NCBI RefSeq assembly: GCF_006345805.1
Contig: NC_043014.1
Location: forward strand, 36,394,001 to 36,458,000
Direction of reading: 5' to 3'
From: Octopus sinensis
Lineage: Eukaryota
Length of the DNA stretch: 64,000 nucleotides
The stretch's first letter is position 1. Each line of letters opens with the position of its first letter. The notes under the pieces were generated by a model. That model saw nothing but the letters and a program-made list of their open reading frames with translations, did not search any database and had not been told where the DNA came from. A program made the translations under genes and the position numbers. Shown piece after piece: positions 15,126-60,259 of this stretch.

Positions 15126-15171
15126 ATGTTGTTAGTTATGATGTTACTGATGTCTTCTTACACTTCGGCTT
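15126..15171 (+). CDS. Gene A exon 1: signal peptide MLLVMMLLMSSYTSA
   Basis: caacaATG context, hydrophobic 15-mer ending T-S-A, phase-1 donor T|GTAAGT, conserved in unit B. An in-frame upstream ATG (15009) is open in both copies, so the true start is uncertain. Confidence 0.8.
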
Positions 15172-15365
15172 GTAAGTTAATATTAAGAAACATAATATTT
15201 TTTTCTGTTACAAAACTGAATCTTCTTCTCTGAGATAACATGCTTTCATCTTTGAAAGACACAGTATACACACACGCACACACACTCACACACACACACA
15301 CACACACGCACACACACACGCACATTATCTACACAGCGACGTATACTTTTCAACAGCGTCACCAC

Positions 15366-15977
15366 AAATACCTATTTCTTTACTGCCCACAAGGGGCTAC
15401 ACACAGAGAGGGGACAAACAAGCATAGACATAGTTATTAAGTCGATTACATCAACCCCCAGTGCGTAACTGGTACTTAATTTATCGACCCCGAAAGGATG
15501 AAAGGCAAAGTCGACCTCGGCGGAATTTGAACTCAAAACGTAACGGCAGACGAAATACCTATTTCTTTATTACCCACAAGGGGCTACACACAGAGAGGGG
15601 ACAAACAAGGACAGACACAGGTATTAAGTCGATTACATCGACCCTCAGTAAGTAACTGGTACTTAATTTATCGACTCCGAAAGGATGAAAGGCAAAGTCG
15701 ACCTCGGCGGAATTTGAACTCAGAACGTAACGGCAGACGAAATACCTATTTCTTTACTACCCACAAGGGGCTACACACAGAGAGGGGACAAACAAGGACA
15801 GACATAGATATTAAGTCGATTACATCGACCCCCAGTAAGTAACTGGTACTTAATTTATCGATCCCGAAAGGATGAAAGACAAAGTCGACCTCGGCGGAAT
15901 TTGAACTCAGAACGTAACGGCAGACGAAATACGGCTACGCATTTCGCCCGGCGTGTTAACGTTTCTGCCAGCTCGCC
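15366..15977 (-). mobile_element. Second tRNA-derived SINE family, amplified to three 187-bp tandem units
   Basis: aaatac recurs at 15366, 15553, 15740 and 15927. The minus-strand head has tggcagaaacgtt and gagttcaaattc. Unit B has a single copy (41523-41757). Confidence 0.85.
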
Positions 15978-16821
15978 ACAAATACCATAATACGAACAAC
16001 ACAACACACTGTTTAATTCAGTACACACACCACACACCATCATGCACACTCTCACACCCACACAAACACATAATATCCAAACACAGAGAATATATAGATA
16101 CACACGCAACACGCATAAACACGCATTACACGCATTGACACGGATAACATTCGCTCACAAAAATACACTATAGATGTGCACGCTATTTGATTACAGATAA
16201 ACACACACACACACACACACACACATACACACGTGCACACACTACCTGAATAAGCTCACATGAACGGCTATACGTGCAACACAACAGACACACGCGCACA
16301 CAGACACGTTAACTTCACAAATATACACACGTCCATATGCACACACACACATGTCCATATGCACACACACACATGTCCATATGCACACACACACATGTCC
16401 ATATGCACACACACACACACACATACAGAGGAATACACAAAACACACATTTCTCCACACAACACATACACTAGGTTAATTTTACACACAAACACGAACAC
16501 ACACACACATACATACATACATACATATATGCATACATACATACATACATACATACATACATACATACATACATACTTACATACATACATACATATGTAC
16601 GTAAGTACGTACGTACGTACGTACATACATACATACATACATATATACATACATACATACATACATACATACATACATACATACATACATACATACATAC
16701 ATACATACATATATATCCCGTTCTGTCAGTGTTTGTAAAAGTTTATAAAAACAGTATTTTTCAACTGATTTCCTCCTGACTGCGAACGTACGATACTTAT
16801 GTTCCAGGGATGGCTTTAGAC

Positions 16822-17118
16822 CAGTGGTTTTTAACCAGGGTTCCGCGGAACCTTCGGGTTCTACCAGTACAGTCCAGGGGTTCCGCAAGAAGTTACAAAA
16901 CAGCTAGGATCTTTTCATTTTGAAAGCCAGATTTTTCAGATTTTCTAATGAACTAAATAACGCAAGAAGTTACAAAACTGCTAAAATCGGCAGTAATTTT
17001 TAATTCTCCTGTGCAGATATGTGTGCATAAGACTATTAAATTATGGCACAGGGGTTCCTCGAGCCATTGGAATGTTTCCTTGGGGTTCCACTCCAGCAAA
17101 AAGTTTGAAAAGCACTCT
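16822..17118. mobile_element. hAT-type MITE (unit B copy 42385-42602)
   Basis: TIR cagtggttttcaacc...tttgaaaagcactg with 8-bp TSD ctttagac, clean in unit B. The unit A copy has an internal ~70-bp duplication/insertion. Confidence 0.85.
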
Positions 17119-56625: not shown

Positions 56626-57430
56626 TTACTTAGTTAGTTAGTTAATTAGTTAGTTAGTTAGTTAGTTAATTTAGCTCAAAAGCAAATAGCAAGGCCATGT
56701 AGGGGGACATGGAGTTAAGTACAGGGTGGTGTTCATGTAAAGAGTTGAGGCCACTTGAGGTCCAGGGAGGCTTTGAACAAAGCGGTCGTCGGCATCTTCA
56801 CCATCTCGTCTGGCAGCTTGTTCCACGGATCCGCAACCCGGACGGAGAAAGCTCCTCTCCTTCGATTGAGATGAAATCGTCGCAGGTAGAGCTTTTCGGA
56901 ATGACCCCGCAGCCGACGCTCTGGAGCAGGAGTGAAGAACAGCTCTTTCGAGAGGTTACACTTTCCGCTTATGATGTTGTGGGCGAGAATGAGATCACCA
57001 CGGCGGCGGCGTTTTTCAAGAGAATAAAGGTCGAGCGTCCTCAAATTTTTGAGACCGTGAACCATGCGGGTAGCCAGCTTCTGGACCCTTTCGAGATGCT
57101 GTATGTCTTTGAGGAGATAAGGAGAAGAGGTTTGAATCCCATACTCCAATATGGGTCTCACCAGCGTGACATAGAGTGGTAGGAATATGGCTGCTGTGAG
57201 CATTCCGAATGACAGTCGAATCAAGAACAGAATTCCGCGTGCTTTGTTGGCAGCATGGACGCACTGGGCCGAAGGCGAAAAGGAGGAATCCACCAAGATA
57301 CCCAGGTCCTTTACCTGATCGGTCCTCTCCAGCAGCAGACGACCCGGGTCGAAATCAAGTTGAGTTGCAGGAGTAGAGCCGACAGGCAGATGACAGCACT
57401 TTGACACGTTCAGACACAGGTCCTAATCGT
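56626..57430 (-). mobile_element. CR1-clade LINE 3' fragment, unit B-specific
   Basis: 224-codon open frame (KDLGILVD, LYVTLVRPILEY, LERVQKLATRM, RGDLI, FSVRV..PWNKLP) and a (TAAC)n tail. The empty site is ttatgattgatc at ~31375. Confidence 0.92.
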
Positions 57431-58794
57431 TGATTGATCTTTCAAAATATTTCCTTTCTCAACTTACTCAAGATCTTTTGTTTTTTTATAAATGGGAGAG
57501 AGAGAGATAAAGAAAGATAGAGAGTGAGATAAAGCGAGGGTGAGTCCGAGAGAAAGGAAGAGTAAGAGAGTGGGAAAGTGAGAGAGAAAAGAGAGAGAAA
57601 CAAAGAGGGAGAATGTGGTGATAAGAAACAGAAAGGAAGCAACAGAAAGTAATAACCACACCCTCACCCACGCATAGAGCGGGTCACCTTAAGTTAGTAA
57701 CATATATTTTTGCGATAGAGCGGGTCACCTTAAGTTAGTAACATATATTTTTGCGATTTTTTTACTTTGTTTCGTTTGTTCTATGTCCCCACAAGGGGAC
57801 ATAGAACAAACGAAACAAATTAAAGACATCTTCGTTGGAGCAGAATACAGCTGAGTTTAGACAGCAAGAGAAAAGAGAACTACATGTCTGCATCCTGAAG
57901 GAATTTCTATGCGTTAAATAGCAGCTAAATCTCCCTGATGCCTATTCTATCGTCCTAGTAAAAGAAAGTTTCATTCGACTATGAAGACTTAGCTATAAAA
58001 GTAAAAATTCAAAAACACTAACATAATCTCTCTAATTATATCTTTTCGTTTAAAAAGTATGAATAACTCTCGTTAATATAATTCAAACGATGTCTAAAGT
58101 AAAAGACAGGGTGGTTACGGAGGGAAAATCTTCGATCATAGGTCAAAGTTATCAGGAATGATCTTAAGATCAACAACAGGTTTCGACTGGTTCCAGCAAT
58201 TTGTCATAAAGAGAATACTTCACGAGAATGCTTCAGTTTGTCTGAATGACATACAATAGGTACTAGTTCATATTTCAGAGATGAGGAGCTTCCAGTAGAA
58301 AAATATAGAGCGTGGCAAGTCAACATAGAAATAAACAAGAACACATACTATAAAGAAAAAATTTCAATACCGGTATAAAAGATTTATATTAAACAAAATG
58401 AGAAAAGATTGATCATACTTTTCGATTGTAGCTCTGGTTAAATATATATATATATATATAGTTAAGCCAAACATGAAAACACAAAGAGAAAACACAACAA
58501 CGCGAGGACGTGGAACAAATATAGTATTATTGGACGCTCAGGAAGGAATGGAAGAAGGAGGGTTTAACATTTCGAGCGGAGCTCTTCGTCAGAAACATAG
58601 AAGGAAAGATCCAGAGAAGGGAAGACGGAGGGAAAAATCGCTAACGGTACACACGCGGTCACAGTTTGAATGATAAACATTTTGATTTCATTTCCAATTT
58701 GGAAAACAAAACTGCATTGAAAACTAAGATAAAAACTTAAATATTATGTTTCTCTATATTATTTTGTTTATAATTTAAAAATTTTTATTTCTAG

Positions 58795-58827
58795 GTACTG
58801 AGCAGAAAGCAATCAGAGACAATGCAG
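58795..58827 (+). CDS. Gene B exon 4: 33-nt stalk
   Basis: Identical to gene A exon 4, with AG/GT intact. Confidence 0.65.
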
Positions 58828-60179
58828 GTATCTTTAATCTTCTAACTTTTGCTTCTTTCAGTTACTGGATGGTGGCCATGCTGGGCTATTTTCTAATAGT
58901 CTTTGTCATACTTATTCCCGAACTGATACGTTGTGGGCACGTAAACAAACCAACACTGGTTTTCCAGTGATGGGGGGAACAAACACTAATGTACACATCT
59001 ATACATACATACATGCACACGCTACACACACTCACACACACATACATACACACAGATATCGCGCACACACAAATATATACACGACATTCTTGGGTCAAGC
59101 ATAGACCTATGCAGGGTACCTGACACCTAGTGTGACATCAGGCGCTCACACCTCTGTCAGCAGGGTATTGGTCTTAGTGGACGTTGCACCGAGATCTGAG
59201 TGTCAAGGAAGGCCAACTGCCCAGTCGTTTTCGAAGAAGTTTTGCGCCGGGTTCCATTGATAATTTACAAAAATTCCTTGCCTGGCAGTGCTACAGAATA
59301 ACGTTGCCGATTCGTAATAAAGTGTACCGGCATGATATTCCCCTCAGCTGCTCTTGCCCTTGATGCACATTGCATGTGAAAGATGATGCGATTAATGTAT
59401 TAGTATAGTGCTTGAGCATCGTTGATTTCTGGAGTTATGTCTACCAGCTGCAATCACTTCTCGGACGGATCTGGTTATAGGTCGACTCCAAAGTGAAGAT
59501 TGCTTCCTTGCTTTCCTTTGATTTTGAAGGGTTGGCAGATTTCCTCTATTAGGTGCTTATGGTGAAAGATGATGCGATTAATGAGAAAGAGACCAAACCT
59601 TCATTGACTTTTCATGTTTAAAGGGAAAGTGAGCGTGGAGTGCAAGGTCCTTTCTCCCAGTAGAACTGTTACACTGTGGATGAATATAGCAAGAATGGCT
59701 CGAGTGAATTGTCGTAACCTAAGCGTGCCCATGTAGTTACAGAAGCATGGAGGAGAGAGAAACACAACAGTATTCCTCGTGAACAGGGGACTCAGGATTA
59801 CTTGTTTACTGTGAGGTTACTTGGTTACCCTTGGGTAGCGTTTCCCTTTTAATTGGGAATTTTGTTGTTTTGATTTTCTTCTGATTATTTATTGTTTACA
59901 TGTGTTTATGTAAATCTCCAATATCCTTGATTACTGTTTCTGAGGCTGCGAGCTGGTAGATTCATGAGCACGCCGTAAAAAATGCTTGGCGGCATTTTGT
60001 CCGGCTTTCTGAGTTAAAATGCCACCGAAGTTGACTTTACTTTTCATTCTTTCAGAGTCAATGAATTAGGCACCAATTGAATACTGGAGTTGATGTAATC
60101 GATGTCCACCTTCACCAAAGTTTTTGGTCTTGTACCAAAATTAAAATGAAATGTGCTTTTTTTTTTCTTTCAATTACAG

Positions 60180-60259
60180 ATAAATTATCTGATGCAAATA
60201 TTATTACTAAGATTTTGAAATTTGCAGCAACACTGCTTGTTATTGGCCATTTTCATTAA
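60180..60259 (+). CDS. Gene B exon 5: DKLSDANIITKILKFAATLLVIGHFH*
   Basis: Polypyrimidine tract plus ttacAG, TAA at 60257-60259. The joined CDS is 801 nt, 266 aa. Confidence 0.7.

Follow-up and report, generated by a model that had tools for sequence, protein, structure and literature searches.

A tandem pair of octopus genes predicted to encode V-type immunoglobulin surface glycoproteins, at the start of an octopod array with a fast-changing V exon

In a 64,000-nucleotide (nt) window of the Octopus sinensis genome (assembly GCF_006345805.1, contig NC_043014.1, positions 36,394,001 to 36,458,000, forward strand), we find two intact copies of a spliced five-exon gene lying in direct tandem between 15126, the ATG of gene 1, and 60259, the last base of the stop codon of gene 2 (coordinates are those of the window, i.e. 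the whole stretch analysed, unless another sequence is named). The explanation that we consider probable is that they are functional paralogs, the first two units of a more extended array, each encoding a small surface glycoprotein with a V-type and a constant-type immunoglobulin (Ig)-like domain, and that the V domain has been diversified for recognition. Amino-acid substitution in the V exon has proceeded at 3–4 times the neutral divergence of the repeat unit, with the structural core and the cysteines fixed. An earlier reading of this DNA, made from the letters alone and called here the original prediction, had described a hidden tandem pair of V+C2 Ig genes from a cephalopod family of variable recognition receptors. 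That interpretation proves largely right, with corrections: the pair is the start of an array, it is hidden only in part, the C2 subtype is unproven, and the family is better called octopod than cephalopod.

Two five-exon genes with intact splice sites

A scan for AG...GT-bounded, stop-free, phase-1 exons of the sizes given in the original prediction (46/333/306 or 309/33/80 nt) recovered every exon of both units where it had been placed, all on the + strand. In gene 1, exon 1 (15126..15171, 46 nt) carries the ATG and the putative signal peptide MLLVMMLLMSSYTSA/F, ends at a GTAAGT donor and is conserved in exon 1 of Octopus bimaculoides. Exon 2 (23670..24002, 333 nt, phase 1-1) encodes the V-like domain, with Cys40, 83, 98, 105 and 113 and the motif CEDATYYKC, and exon 3 (24953..25258, 306 nt, phase 1-1) the constant-type Ig-like domain, with Cys151, Trp166, Cys189 and Cys213. 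They are followed by the stalk exon 4 (32716..32748, 33 nt, phase 1-1; G-TEQKAIRDNA), which has a homologous 33-nt exon in the O. bimaculoides gene for XP_014786273.1, and by exon 5 (33972..34051, 80 nt), which encodes the tail DKLYDANIITKILKFAATLLVIGHFH before a TAA and is likewise conserved in O. bimaculoides. Gene 2 repeats this layout with exon 1 at 41253..41298 (46 nt, signal peptide), exon 2 at 49572..49904 (333 nt, V-like domain, 38 of 110 residues different from gene 1), exon 3 at 51442..51750 (309 nt, second Ig-like domain, with one extra codon that gives a ninth cysteine, GNS-C-SVSC), exon 4 at 58795..58827 (33 nt, stalk) and exon 5 at 60180..60259 (80 nt, hydrophobic tail and stop).

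Joining the exons reproduced the predicted stop-free proteins, a 798-nt open reading frame of 265 amino acids for gene 1 and an 801-nt frame of 266 amino acids for gene 2. All eight introns run from GT to AG and lie in phase 1, every acceptor is preceded by a strong, long polypyrimidine tract, and the donors of exons 1 to 4 read GTAAGT, GTCAGT or GTAAGT, GTAAAC, and GTATCT. The 33-nt exon is weak on its own because each intron interval contains 31–34 stop-free AG/GT candidates of that length; it is rescued by the comparative evidence. A candidate poly(A) signal, AATAAA, presumably used as such, stands at 35484..35489 (+), 1.43 kb past the stop codon of gene 1, with its counterpart at 61795..61800 (+) behind gene 2. 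Its 20-nt context, CCGGAAATAAATATTTGACT, is identical 1.4–1.5 kb past both stops in the window, and a one-base variant of it lies ~1 kb past the stop in O. bimaculoides. Conservation with that species is also visible over the 160 nt upstream of the gene 1 start codon.

Two further candidates for coding sequence were rejected. A possible alternative 3′ exon at 34848–34904 and 61073–61129 (+), ~0.8 kb past each stop, resembles the odd C-terminus of an older model of O. bimaculoides LOC106880715 (P0007), but since it has no AG acceptor and a stop codon lies just upstream, it is probably conserved 3′ untranslated region and not an exon. Read-through into intron 2 after the V exon (24049–24141 and 49951–50043) was dismissed because the similarity to the protein P0026 is in a different frame; this similarity looks like a conserved intron segment that gene calling took in on a short genomic contig.

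Predicted fold of the two domains

The fold was modelled on the full-length O. bimaculoides ortholog. With a 16-sequence alignment, AlphaFold2 returned a mean predicted local distance difference test score (pLDDT) of 85.8 and a predicted template modelling score of 0.75, with residues ~20–220 above a pLDDT of 90. The model has nine strands in domain 1, seven in domain 2, a low-confidence stalk and a terminal helix. In domain 1, DSSP assigns strands at residues 17–24, 36–44, 50–55, 59–67, 72–78, 82–84, 91–99 and 108–113, plus strand G. The nine strands of a V-set domain, including C′ and C″, are thereby all present in the model, and the Pfam V-set match is sub-threshold.

A Foldseek search of the Protein Data Bank (PDB) with this model returned 1164 matches at E ≤ 1e-3, and the top matches are all chains with an Ig V domain followed by a constant domain, at probability 1.0. 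They comprise antibody light chains, T-cell receptor (TCR) beta chains and the butyrophilins BTN2A1 and BTN3A1 (E 1e-7 to 1e-6, 10–16% identity, whole-chain template modelling (TM) scores of 0.3–0.48). The residues at canonical Ig positions agree with this fold: Cys40 and CEDATYYKC113 in domain 1, and Cys151, Trp166 and Cys213 in domain 2, are invariant or nearly so across 16 family members, with the exception that Phe or Leu replaces the strand C Trp of domain 1. The cysteine positions suggest the corresponding disulfide bonds.

Sequence profiles are less informative. Neither window protein has a Pfam match at E ≤ 10, and a family profile searched against PDB sequences gave marginal matches (E 1e-3 to 0.3, best 1.1e-3), nearly all to Fab light chains and Fc-gamma receptor II. 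The Ig assignment rests on the predicted structure and these marginal profile matches because no Pfam Ig model reaches threshold. The original prediction had named a fold other than Ig as the outcome that would speak against it; AlphaFold2 and Foldseek instead predict an Ig sandwich.

The second domain of gene 1, modelled alone (24955–25257), has a pLDDT of 94.3 and seven strands. Searched against the PDB by itself, it found nothing at E ≤ 1e-3; its weak matches with the best TM-scores (0.59–0.67) are the C1-set domains of HLA-DO, HLA-DM and HLA-DR beta, with beta2-microglobulin at 0.54, and it also weakly matches non-Ig sandwiches such as TRAP subunits, PDE6D/UNC119 and NPC2. These weak, C1-leaning matches justify the term "constant-type Ig-like" and leave "C2" unproven. 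Thus every part of the architecture originally proposed (signal peptide, V-like domain, second Ig-like domain, stalk and hydrophobic tail) is found, and only the C2 label of the second domain is not established. On the strength of the models, we are confident that the ectodomain has a predicted V-like and a constant-type Ig fold.

Topology and membrane anchoring

The proteins have two hydrophobic peaks only, at residues ~2–11 and ~250–262. The N-terminal peak lies within exon 1 and ends in T-S-A/F, consistent with the -3/-1 rule for signal-peptide cleavage. The C-terminal peak forms the final 19, mostly hydrophobic residues, with no residues beyond it and with a polar spacer and small residues upstream (D-N-A at the exon 4/5 junction). 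By rule of thumb, this is the pattern of a glycosylphosphatidylinositol (GPI) signal, with D-N-A or D-A-N as candidate omega site, the seven-residue spacer DKLYDAN and the tail IITKILKFAATLLVIGHFH (mean Kyte–Doolittle value 1.4). The layout suits a transmembrane anchor less well than a GPI-attachment signal, which is its most likely reading. Gene 1 encodes four N-glycosylation sequons and gene 2 three.

The pair opens an array shared with O. vulgaris

When the first 39 kb of the window were compared with the remainder by blastn, one large direct repeat emerged, in which 12971–37598 is colinear with 39571–63968 (21,959 aligned bases, 4.6% mismatches, period ~26.3 kb). Unit 1 (12971..39570, +) contains gene 1 with its introns filled by transposable elements (TEs), and unit 2 (39571..63968, +) contains gene 2 and extends to the window end. 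The O. vulgaris chromosome OX597833.1 is 96.4–98.7% identical to the window around 44.08–44.145 Mb. There, three overlapping loci spanning 149 kb hold four complete units in a row, each with signal, V, C, stalk and tail exons, at 44,096,033–44,114,902 (unit 1), 44,122,278–44,140,774 (unit 2), 44,149,155–44,166,131 (unit 3) and 44,191,065–44,209,453 (unit 4); units 3 and 4 lie downstream of the part that corresponds to the window. The V and C exons are open in all four, and past them lie an extra stalk/tail pair and divergent partial copies.

The window genes are units 1 and 2 of this array and have one-to-one O. vulgaris counterparts; the expansion therefore predates the split between the window species and the O. 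vulgaris assembly. Because the orthologous place in O. bimaculoides holds a single gene, it postdates the split of the O. vulgaris and O. bimaculoides lineages. The two tandem copies of the original prediction are intact as claimed, but they are not an isolated pair: beside the four O. vulgaris units, one deposited model alone strings together at least three further V-type units.

That model belongs to a set of deposited O. vulgaris proteins, P0001, P0002, P0004 and P0005 (loci L002, L003 and L004, 44.09–44.24 Mb), which are chimeras or truncations in which signal and tail exons are skipped. The order in P0002 (287 amino acids) is V-stalk-V-stalk-stalk-tail, in P0001 the signal exon and half of the V domain are missing, and P0005 (726 amino acids) joins its V-type units across 144 kb. 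Taken at face value, this annotation would mean that our units are exons of one long multi-domain gene, and P0002 and P0005 do combine several units without breaking the frame, as phase 1-1 of all internal exons allows. Against this, a start codon in a signal-peptide exon, a terminal exon with a stop codon and, downstream, a conserved AATAAA are found separately in each unit, and the chimeric models leave out the signal and tail exons located between those that they connect. In O. bimaculoides, RefSeq itself annotates a standalone five-exon gene of 263 amino acids, which matches the spliced genes of the window; exons of a larger conserved single-copy gene, another outcome that was to count against the original prediction, are therefore not what the locus shows. 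We therefore regard a single long gene as highly improbable and treat the units as separate genes.

As a separate observation, an inverted orphan tail exon lies ~3 kb upstream of gene 1, at 11834–11926 (-). Its identity is 73% with the tail region of O. bimaculoides LOC106880714 (P0013) and 60% with the tail of P0011, and no V or C exon accompanies it on the - strand. The O. vulgaris array likewise has similar tail-like pieces, inverted or direct, at each end (44,092,886 -, 44,227,775 + and 44,236,152 -).

The V exon has diverged beyond the neutral rate

Between gene 1 and gene 2, exons 1 to 5 are 95.7, 86.5, 94.4, 100 and 98.8% identical. For the V exon, Nei–Gojobori counting gives 42.5 nonsynonymous (Nd) and 2.5 synonymous (Sd) differences, which correspond to a dN of 0.187, a dS of 0.035 and a ratio (omega) of 5.3; for the second-domain exon omega is ~1.1. 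The 45 mismatches in 333 nt exceed the neutral 4.6% (P = 1.5e-10), and finding at most two synonymous changes among 45 has a probability of 0.0012. A codon bootstrap puts the difference between the nonsynonymous and synonymous proportions (pN-pS) at 0.13 (95% confidence interval 0.07–0.19), with none of 5000 replicates at or below zero. Among 702 positions of a 333-nt sliding scan along the whole unit, the V exon is the most divergent, at 13.5% (median 4.2%, 95th percentile 9.0%), and its only rivals lie in a (TATC)n microsatellite. By codon position, the V-exon differences are distributed 19:20:6, and selection therefore sees the predicted reading frame.

The same tendency appears in the relatives. 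Among the four O. vulgaris units, V-exon omega is 2.7–5.2 wherever synonymous changes exist, and against O. bimaculoides it is 1.4–2.0 for the V exon and 1.0–1.4 for the second domain. The "variable recognition" idea of the original prediction gains from these values, with omega ~5 for V between copies and above 1 against O. bimaculoides. Within the V domain, the 38 amino-acid differences spare strand B, strand C and the cysteine-bearing segments and cluster in the A strand, the A-B turn, the BC loop, C′, the C′C″ loop, C″, the D-E region and the FG loop.

One explanation considered for the V divergence, gene conversion from a distant paralog, was rejected, since conversion would raise synonymous differences too and there are just 2.5 of them. 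We also weighed the view that the copies are young duplicates under neutral drift or decay, whose variability reflects relaxed constraint. Drift would fit the second-domain omega of ~1 between copies, the new TE insertions in the introns (a mariner element in gene 1 only, an insert of ~0.8 kb in gene 2 only) and the absence of transcript evidence for the subfamily in the protein database. Yet the V and second-domain exons were examined in six genes, two from the window and four from O. vulgaris, and every one of them is open; the window has all ten of its splice sites intact, and none of the eight family cysteines has been lost. Moreover, the nonsynonymous divergence of the V exon, 16.5% of sites, stands far above the neutral 4.6% (P ~ 1e-12) and comes with the codon-position bias given above. 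Relaxed constraint can lift dN to the neutral rate but not above it, and therefore cannot explain the V exon; we give drift very little credence as an account of these genes. Positive, diversifying selection on the V exon is the simplest reading of these sequence comparisons.

A lineage-specific octopod family

Searched against 5.8 billion proteins, the joined protein had only four matches (E = 2.6e-128 to 2.9e-77), three O. vulgaris "hypothetical predicted proteins" and O. bimaculoides LOC106880713 isoform X1 (263 amino acids), and no protein on record is identical to the window products. The O. bimaculoides protein is XP_014786273.1 (UniProt A0A0L8FWD2, "Ig-like domain-containing protein"; "uncharacterized" in RefSeq), with 60–61% amino-acid identity to the window proteins. 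Mapped to its own locus, it has five exons of 49/324/306/33/80 nt, all in phase 1, and the residues at its exon junctions match those of the window genes. The introns of the window genes and of O. bimaculoides align at 76–90% identity, and the genes are therefore orthologous. Its neighbours LOC106880708, LOC106880709, LOC106880714 and LOC106880715 are paralogs in the same tandem cluster (35–43% identical; those flanking the single O. bimaculoides gene, 35–38%). A search of the literature by gene, accession and topic found no paper on the family and no described function for LOC106880713 and its neighbours. The locus was hidden only in part: the deposited models of O. vulgaris are chimeric, and RefSeq already contains "uncharacterized protein" models of the ortholog and of many paralogs in O. 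bimaculoides and O. sinensis.

A filter-free phmmer search with the ortholog against 1.84 billion representative proteins gave 42 matches, 34 of them at E ≤ 1e-10 and 11 at E ≤ 1e-30. The source was looked up for 30 of the 42, the remaining 12 not being looked up. Twenty-six of these 30 come from O. bimaculoides, O. vulgaris, O. sinensis or Argonauta hians; the others are a weak match to an axolotl "titin-like" multi-Ig protein, two short Logan read-assembly contigs and one NCBI contig, the contigs without organism name. No squid, cuttlefish or other mollusc is among the 30 at phmmer sensitivity. A profile search of a word-indexed protein database returned just five proteins and added almost nothing to the single-sequence searches. 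The family is lineage-specific and tandemly expanded, as proposed, but "cephalopod" is too broad a name for a distribution that covers Octopus and Argonauta.

In an alignment of 16 members, domain 1 has five conserved cysteines and domain 2 three, which make up a scaffold of eight, and domain 2 also has an invariant Trp. The shared motifs are GF-x-C, C-W-K (C-W/S/T-K) and C-x-D-x-x-x-Y-x-C, and in domain 2 C...W...C...C. Both window proteins have all eight cysteines and the family motifs, and the 5 + 3 pattern suggests a disulfide between the domains. The ninth cysteine of gene 2 (Cys210), which arises from the 3-nt insertion, is common to O. vulgaris units 2–4 and absent from unit 1 and from O. 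bimaculoides; as an odd cysteine it might permit covalent pairing.

The C-termini differ between subfamilies. The window type has a short hydrophobic end, others have a classic GPI-type end (SGSG...WVLVVNLILLLL..SR), and yet others have Thr/Pro-rich mucin stalks or a transmembrane helix with a cytoplasmic tail. From the GPI-type tails and the transmembrane and cytoplasmic tails of these other members it follows that the family is surface-anchored in several ways. In the O. bimaculoides protein P0011, an isoform of LOC106880715, the V exon is joined in frame to stalk and tail and the second Ig domain is skipped, which is possible because all exons are in phase 1-1. V-only isoforms of the window genes may exist as well.

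Comparison with known Ig families

The nearest relatives of the window genes are O. bimaculoides LOC106880713 and its neighbours, with the same exons and phases and alignable introns; they differ in that a single gene there corresponds to an array of at least four in the window species and O. vulgaris. Beyond octopods, the best whole-chain matches of the predicted structure, i.e. the butyrophilin/B7 proteins (IgV + IgC), antibody light chains and TCR beta, share the order of a V domain followed by a constant-type domain. Butyrophilins and their B7 relatives are tandemly duplicated, fast-evolving surface ligands. Unlike these proteins, the octopus subfamily has no B30.2 domain, no transmembrane or cytoplasmic part, no rearrangement machinery and a 5 + 3 cysteine pattern, and the likeness appears to be one of fold, with no demonstrated common family.

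The plan of signal peptide, V-like N-terminal domain, second Ig domain and GPI-type tail is shared with CD48 and CD58 of the CD2–SLAM group and with the GPI-linked CEACAMs, which also form tandem clusters and evolve rapidly. CD2-family V domains and CEACAM N-domains lack the B-F disulfide; in the octopus V domain, cysteines are present at the B and F positions (Cys40 and Cys113, in DATYYxC). Neither phmmer (1.84 billion proteins) nor Pfam nor the PDB profile search detected sequence similarity to CD48, CD58 or CEACAMs. Membership in the CD2/SLAM type, which the original prediction had brought in by comparison, is thus contradicted by the B-F cysteines and by the lack of a CD2-family match in the phmmer and PDB profile searches. 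The divergence of the CEACAM/PSG genes is among the subjects of PMC3628338.

In its logic of lineage-specific, germline-encoded tandem Ig genes with a variable N-terminal domain, the array resembles the gastropod FREPs, the amphioxus VCBPs and Hydractinia Alr. The octopus proteins differ from FREPs, which combine Ig domains with a C-terminal fibrinogen domain, in ending in a stalk and hydrophobic tail with no Pfam fibrinogen match, and from VCBPs in having no chitin-binding domain; no homology was detected. In a 2026 review of invertebrate immune diversification, which summarises FREPs and VCBPs, molluscs are represented by the gastropod FREPs only, with no cephalopod system (PMC13428168).

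Proposed function and its alternatives

In the mechanism that we propose, exon 1 would provide a cleaved signal peptide, so that the product enters the secretory pathway and becomes a glycoprotein. The V-type domain of exon 2 would be membrane-distal and the constant-type domain of exon 3 membrane-proximal, and exons 4 and 5 would supply a short stalk and a C-terminal hydrophobic segment without cytoplasmic residues that acts as a GPI-attachment signal. Such a cell-surface protein would use its V domain to bind a fast-evolving partner. Because the paralog differences cluster there, the likely contact surface comprises the BC, C′C″, DE and FG loops with the C′ and C″ strands. Duplication and diversifying selection would then yield a germline-encoded repertoire of binding specificities, by a logic that we infer to be that of pathogen-facing or conspecific-recognition Ig superfamily (IgSF) arrays.

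Several points weigh against this explanation or limit it. No Pfam Ig model rose above the cut-off in any of the 16 members (best Ig_2 0.017, C2-set_2 0.03 and V-set 0.042), and their sub-threshold Ig matches are interspersed with noise. The tail contains two lysines and an uninterrupted hydrophobic core of only ~11 residues, for a GPI signal judged by rule of thumb. The dN/dS values are pairwise Nei–Gojobori counts and not a site model on a tree, and the orthologs of the window and O. vulgaris differ by 11 nonsynonymous and three synonymous changes, too few to show ongoing selection. No assembled-read (Logan) product of the window subfamily was returned from the protein database. Finally, the data do not discriminate between immune, reproductive, self-recognition and neural roles.

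One of these roles would make the genes part of a neuronal or epithelial adhesion code, as GPI-linked two-Ig molecules similar to IgLONs or Dprs/DIPs that label cells in the nervous system, skin or suckers. The signal peptide, two Ig-like domains and GPI-like tail fit that architecture, and phase 1-1 exons permit the in-frame skipping seen in P0011, which is without the second domain. Octopus adhesion families, such as the protocadherins, are known to be expanded (PMC6339937). On the other side, copy number is one in O. bimaculoides and at least four in the O. vulgaris group, the family census found no relative outside octopods, and omega exceeds 1 for both domains between species and reaches ~5 between paralogs. 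Wiring and adhesion receptors are normally conserved under purifying selection, and we consider an adhesion code unlikely.

The genes might otherwise encode reproductive recognition proteins, acting between sperm and egg, on the spermatophore or in the female tract, with sexual conflict or species-specific fertilisation driving the change. Such a role would lead one to expect lineage-specific duplication and, on a scaffold of conserved cysteines, a dN/dS above 1, but fast evolution with a kept scaffold and lineage duplication is typical of gamete-recognition and immune proteins alike. There is no resemblance to known gamete-recognition families, Pfam giving nothing and Foldseek generic Ig matches, and a reproductive role seems to us about as improbable as the adhesion code. 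By analogy with other Ig arrays, we lean weakly toward an immune or microbe-facing role, as receptor or decoy, over gamete recognition and over neuronal or epithelial adhesion.

A broader proposal, which we put forward only tentatively, is that variable V-type Ig surface receptors form a germline-encoded repertoire that arose within octopods, as a tandem array in which copies are gained within a few percent of sequence divergence and the V domains diverge under diversifying selection, with fast-evolving pathogens or symbionts, or conspecific or self tissue, as targets. The self-recognition between skin and suckers of octopus arms, still unexplained, is a possible conspecific or self example. 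If true, this repertoire would be an independent cephalopod counterpart of the FREPs, the VCBPs or the vertebrate arrays of butyrophilin, SIRP and CEACAM type.

Fast-evolving tandem families of IgSF surface proteins are a familiar kind of system; the octopod family itself is undescribed, too divergent for Pfam and built on an unusual 5 + 3 cysteine scaffold. Cephalopods are without a described diversified family of immune or recognition receptors, and the locus offers a concrete candidate that can be cloned, whose V domain is the fastest-changing stretch of a 26-kb repeat unit in an array that grew once the lineages of O. vulgaris and O. bimaculoides had parted. Since the O. vulgaris models are chimeric and no identical protein is on record, the size and variability of the family are underestimated in current gene sets, and the O. 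vulgaris locus needs re-annotation. The interest for comparative immunology and cephalopod biology is moderate to high and hinges on expression.

Transposons and repeats around the genes

The window is AT-rich animal DNA (GC content 30–46%) with microsatellites and transposon fragments throughout; no tRNA gene was found within it. The TE-filled introns of the original prediction are borne out by debris of long interspersed nuclear element (LINE) reverse transcriptase and mariner transposase. LINE-type RVT_1 fragments (Pfam) lie at 28357–28935 (-), 54669–55221 (-) and 9329–9763 (+), and the intron 3 reverse transcriptase predates the duplication because it is present in both units. A mariner-type element occurs in two copies 92% identical, at 21569–22776 in intron 1 of gene 1 and at 6940–8152, with a Pfam Transposase_1 match on the open reading frame 7249–7914 (-); as the intron copy is absent from gene 2, it was inserted after the duplication. 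Private inserts of gene 2 lie at ~43628–44278, 45307–46412 and 56626–57430. Upstream of the array, PIF1-like helicase fragments (Pfam PIF1, E = 5e-43, and Pif1_2B) at 3–449, 1615–2202 and 2235–2705 (+), partly duplicated, are probably the remains of a Helitron-type transposon.

Among the simple repeats, a (CTT)n/(TTC)n tract (23414–23605 and 49370–49507) ends ~65 nt short of the V-exon acceptor in both genes, and a (TATC)n array (14497–14835 and 40711–40993) lies ~300 nt upstream of each ATG; both have different lengths in the two copies. Intron 1 of gene 1 additionally contains three tandem repeats of a 187-bp unit (15366–15932, 95% matches), an array not reported in gene 2.

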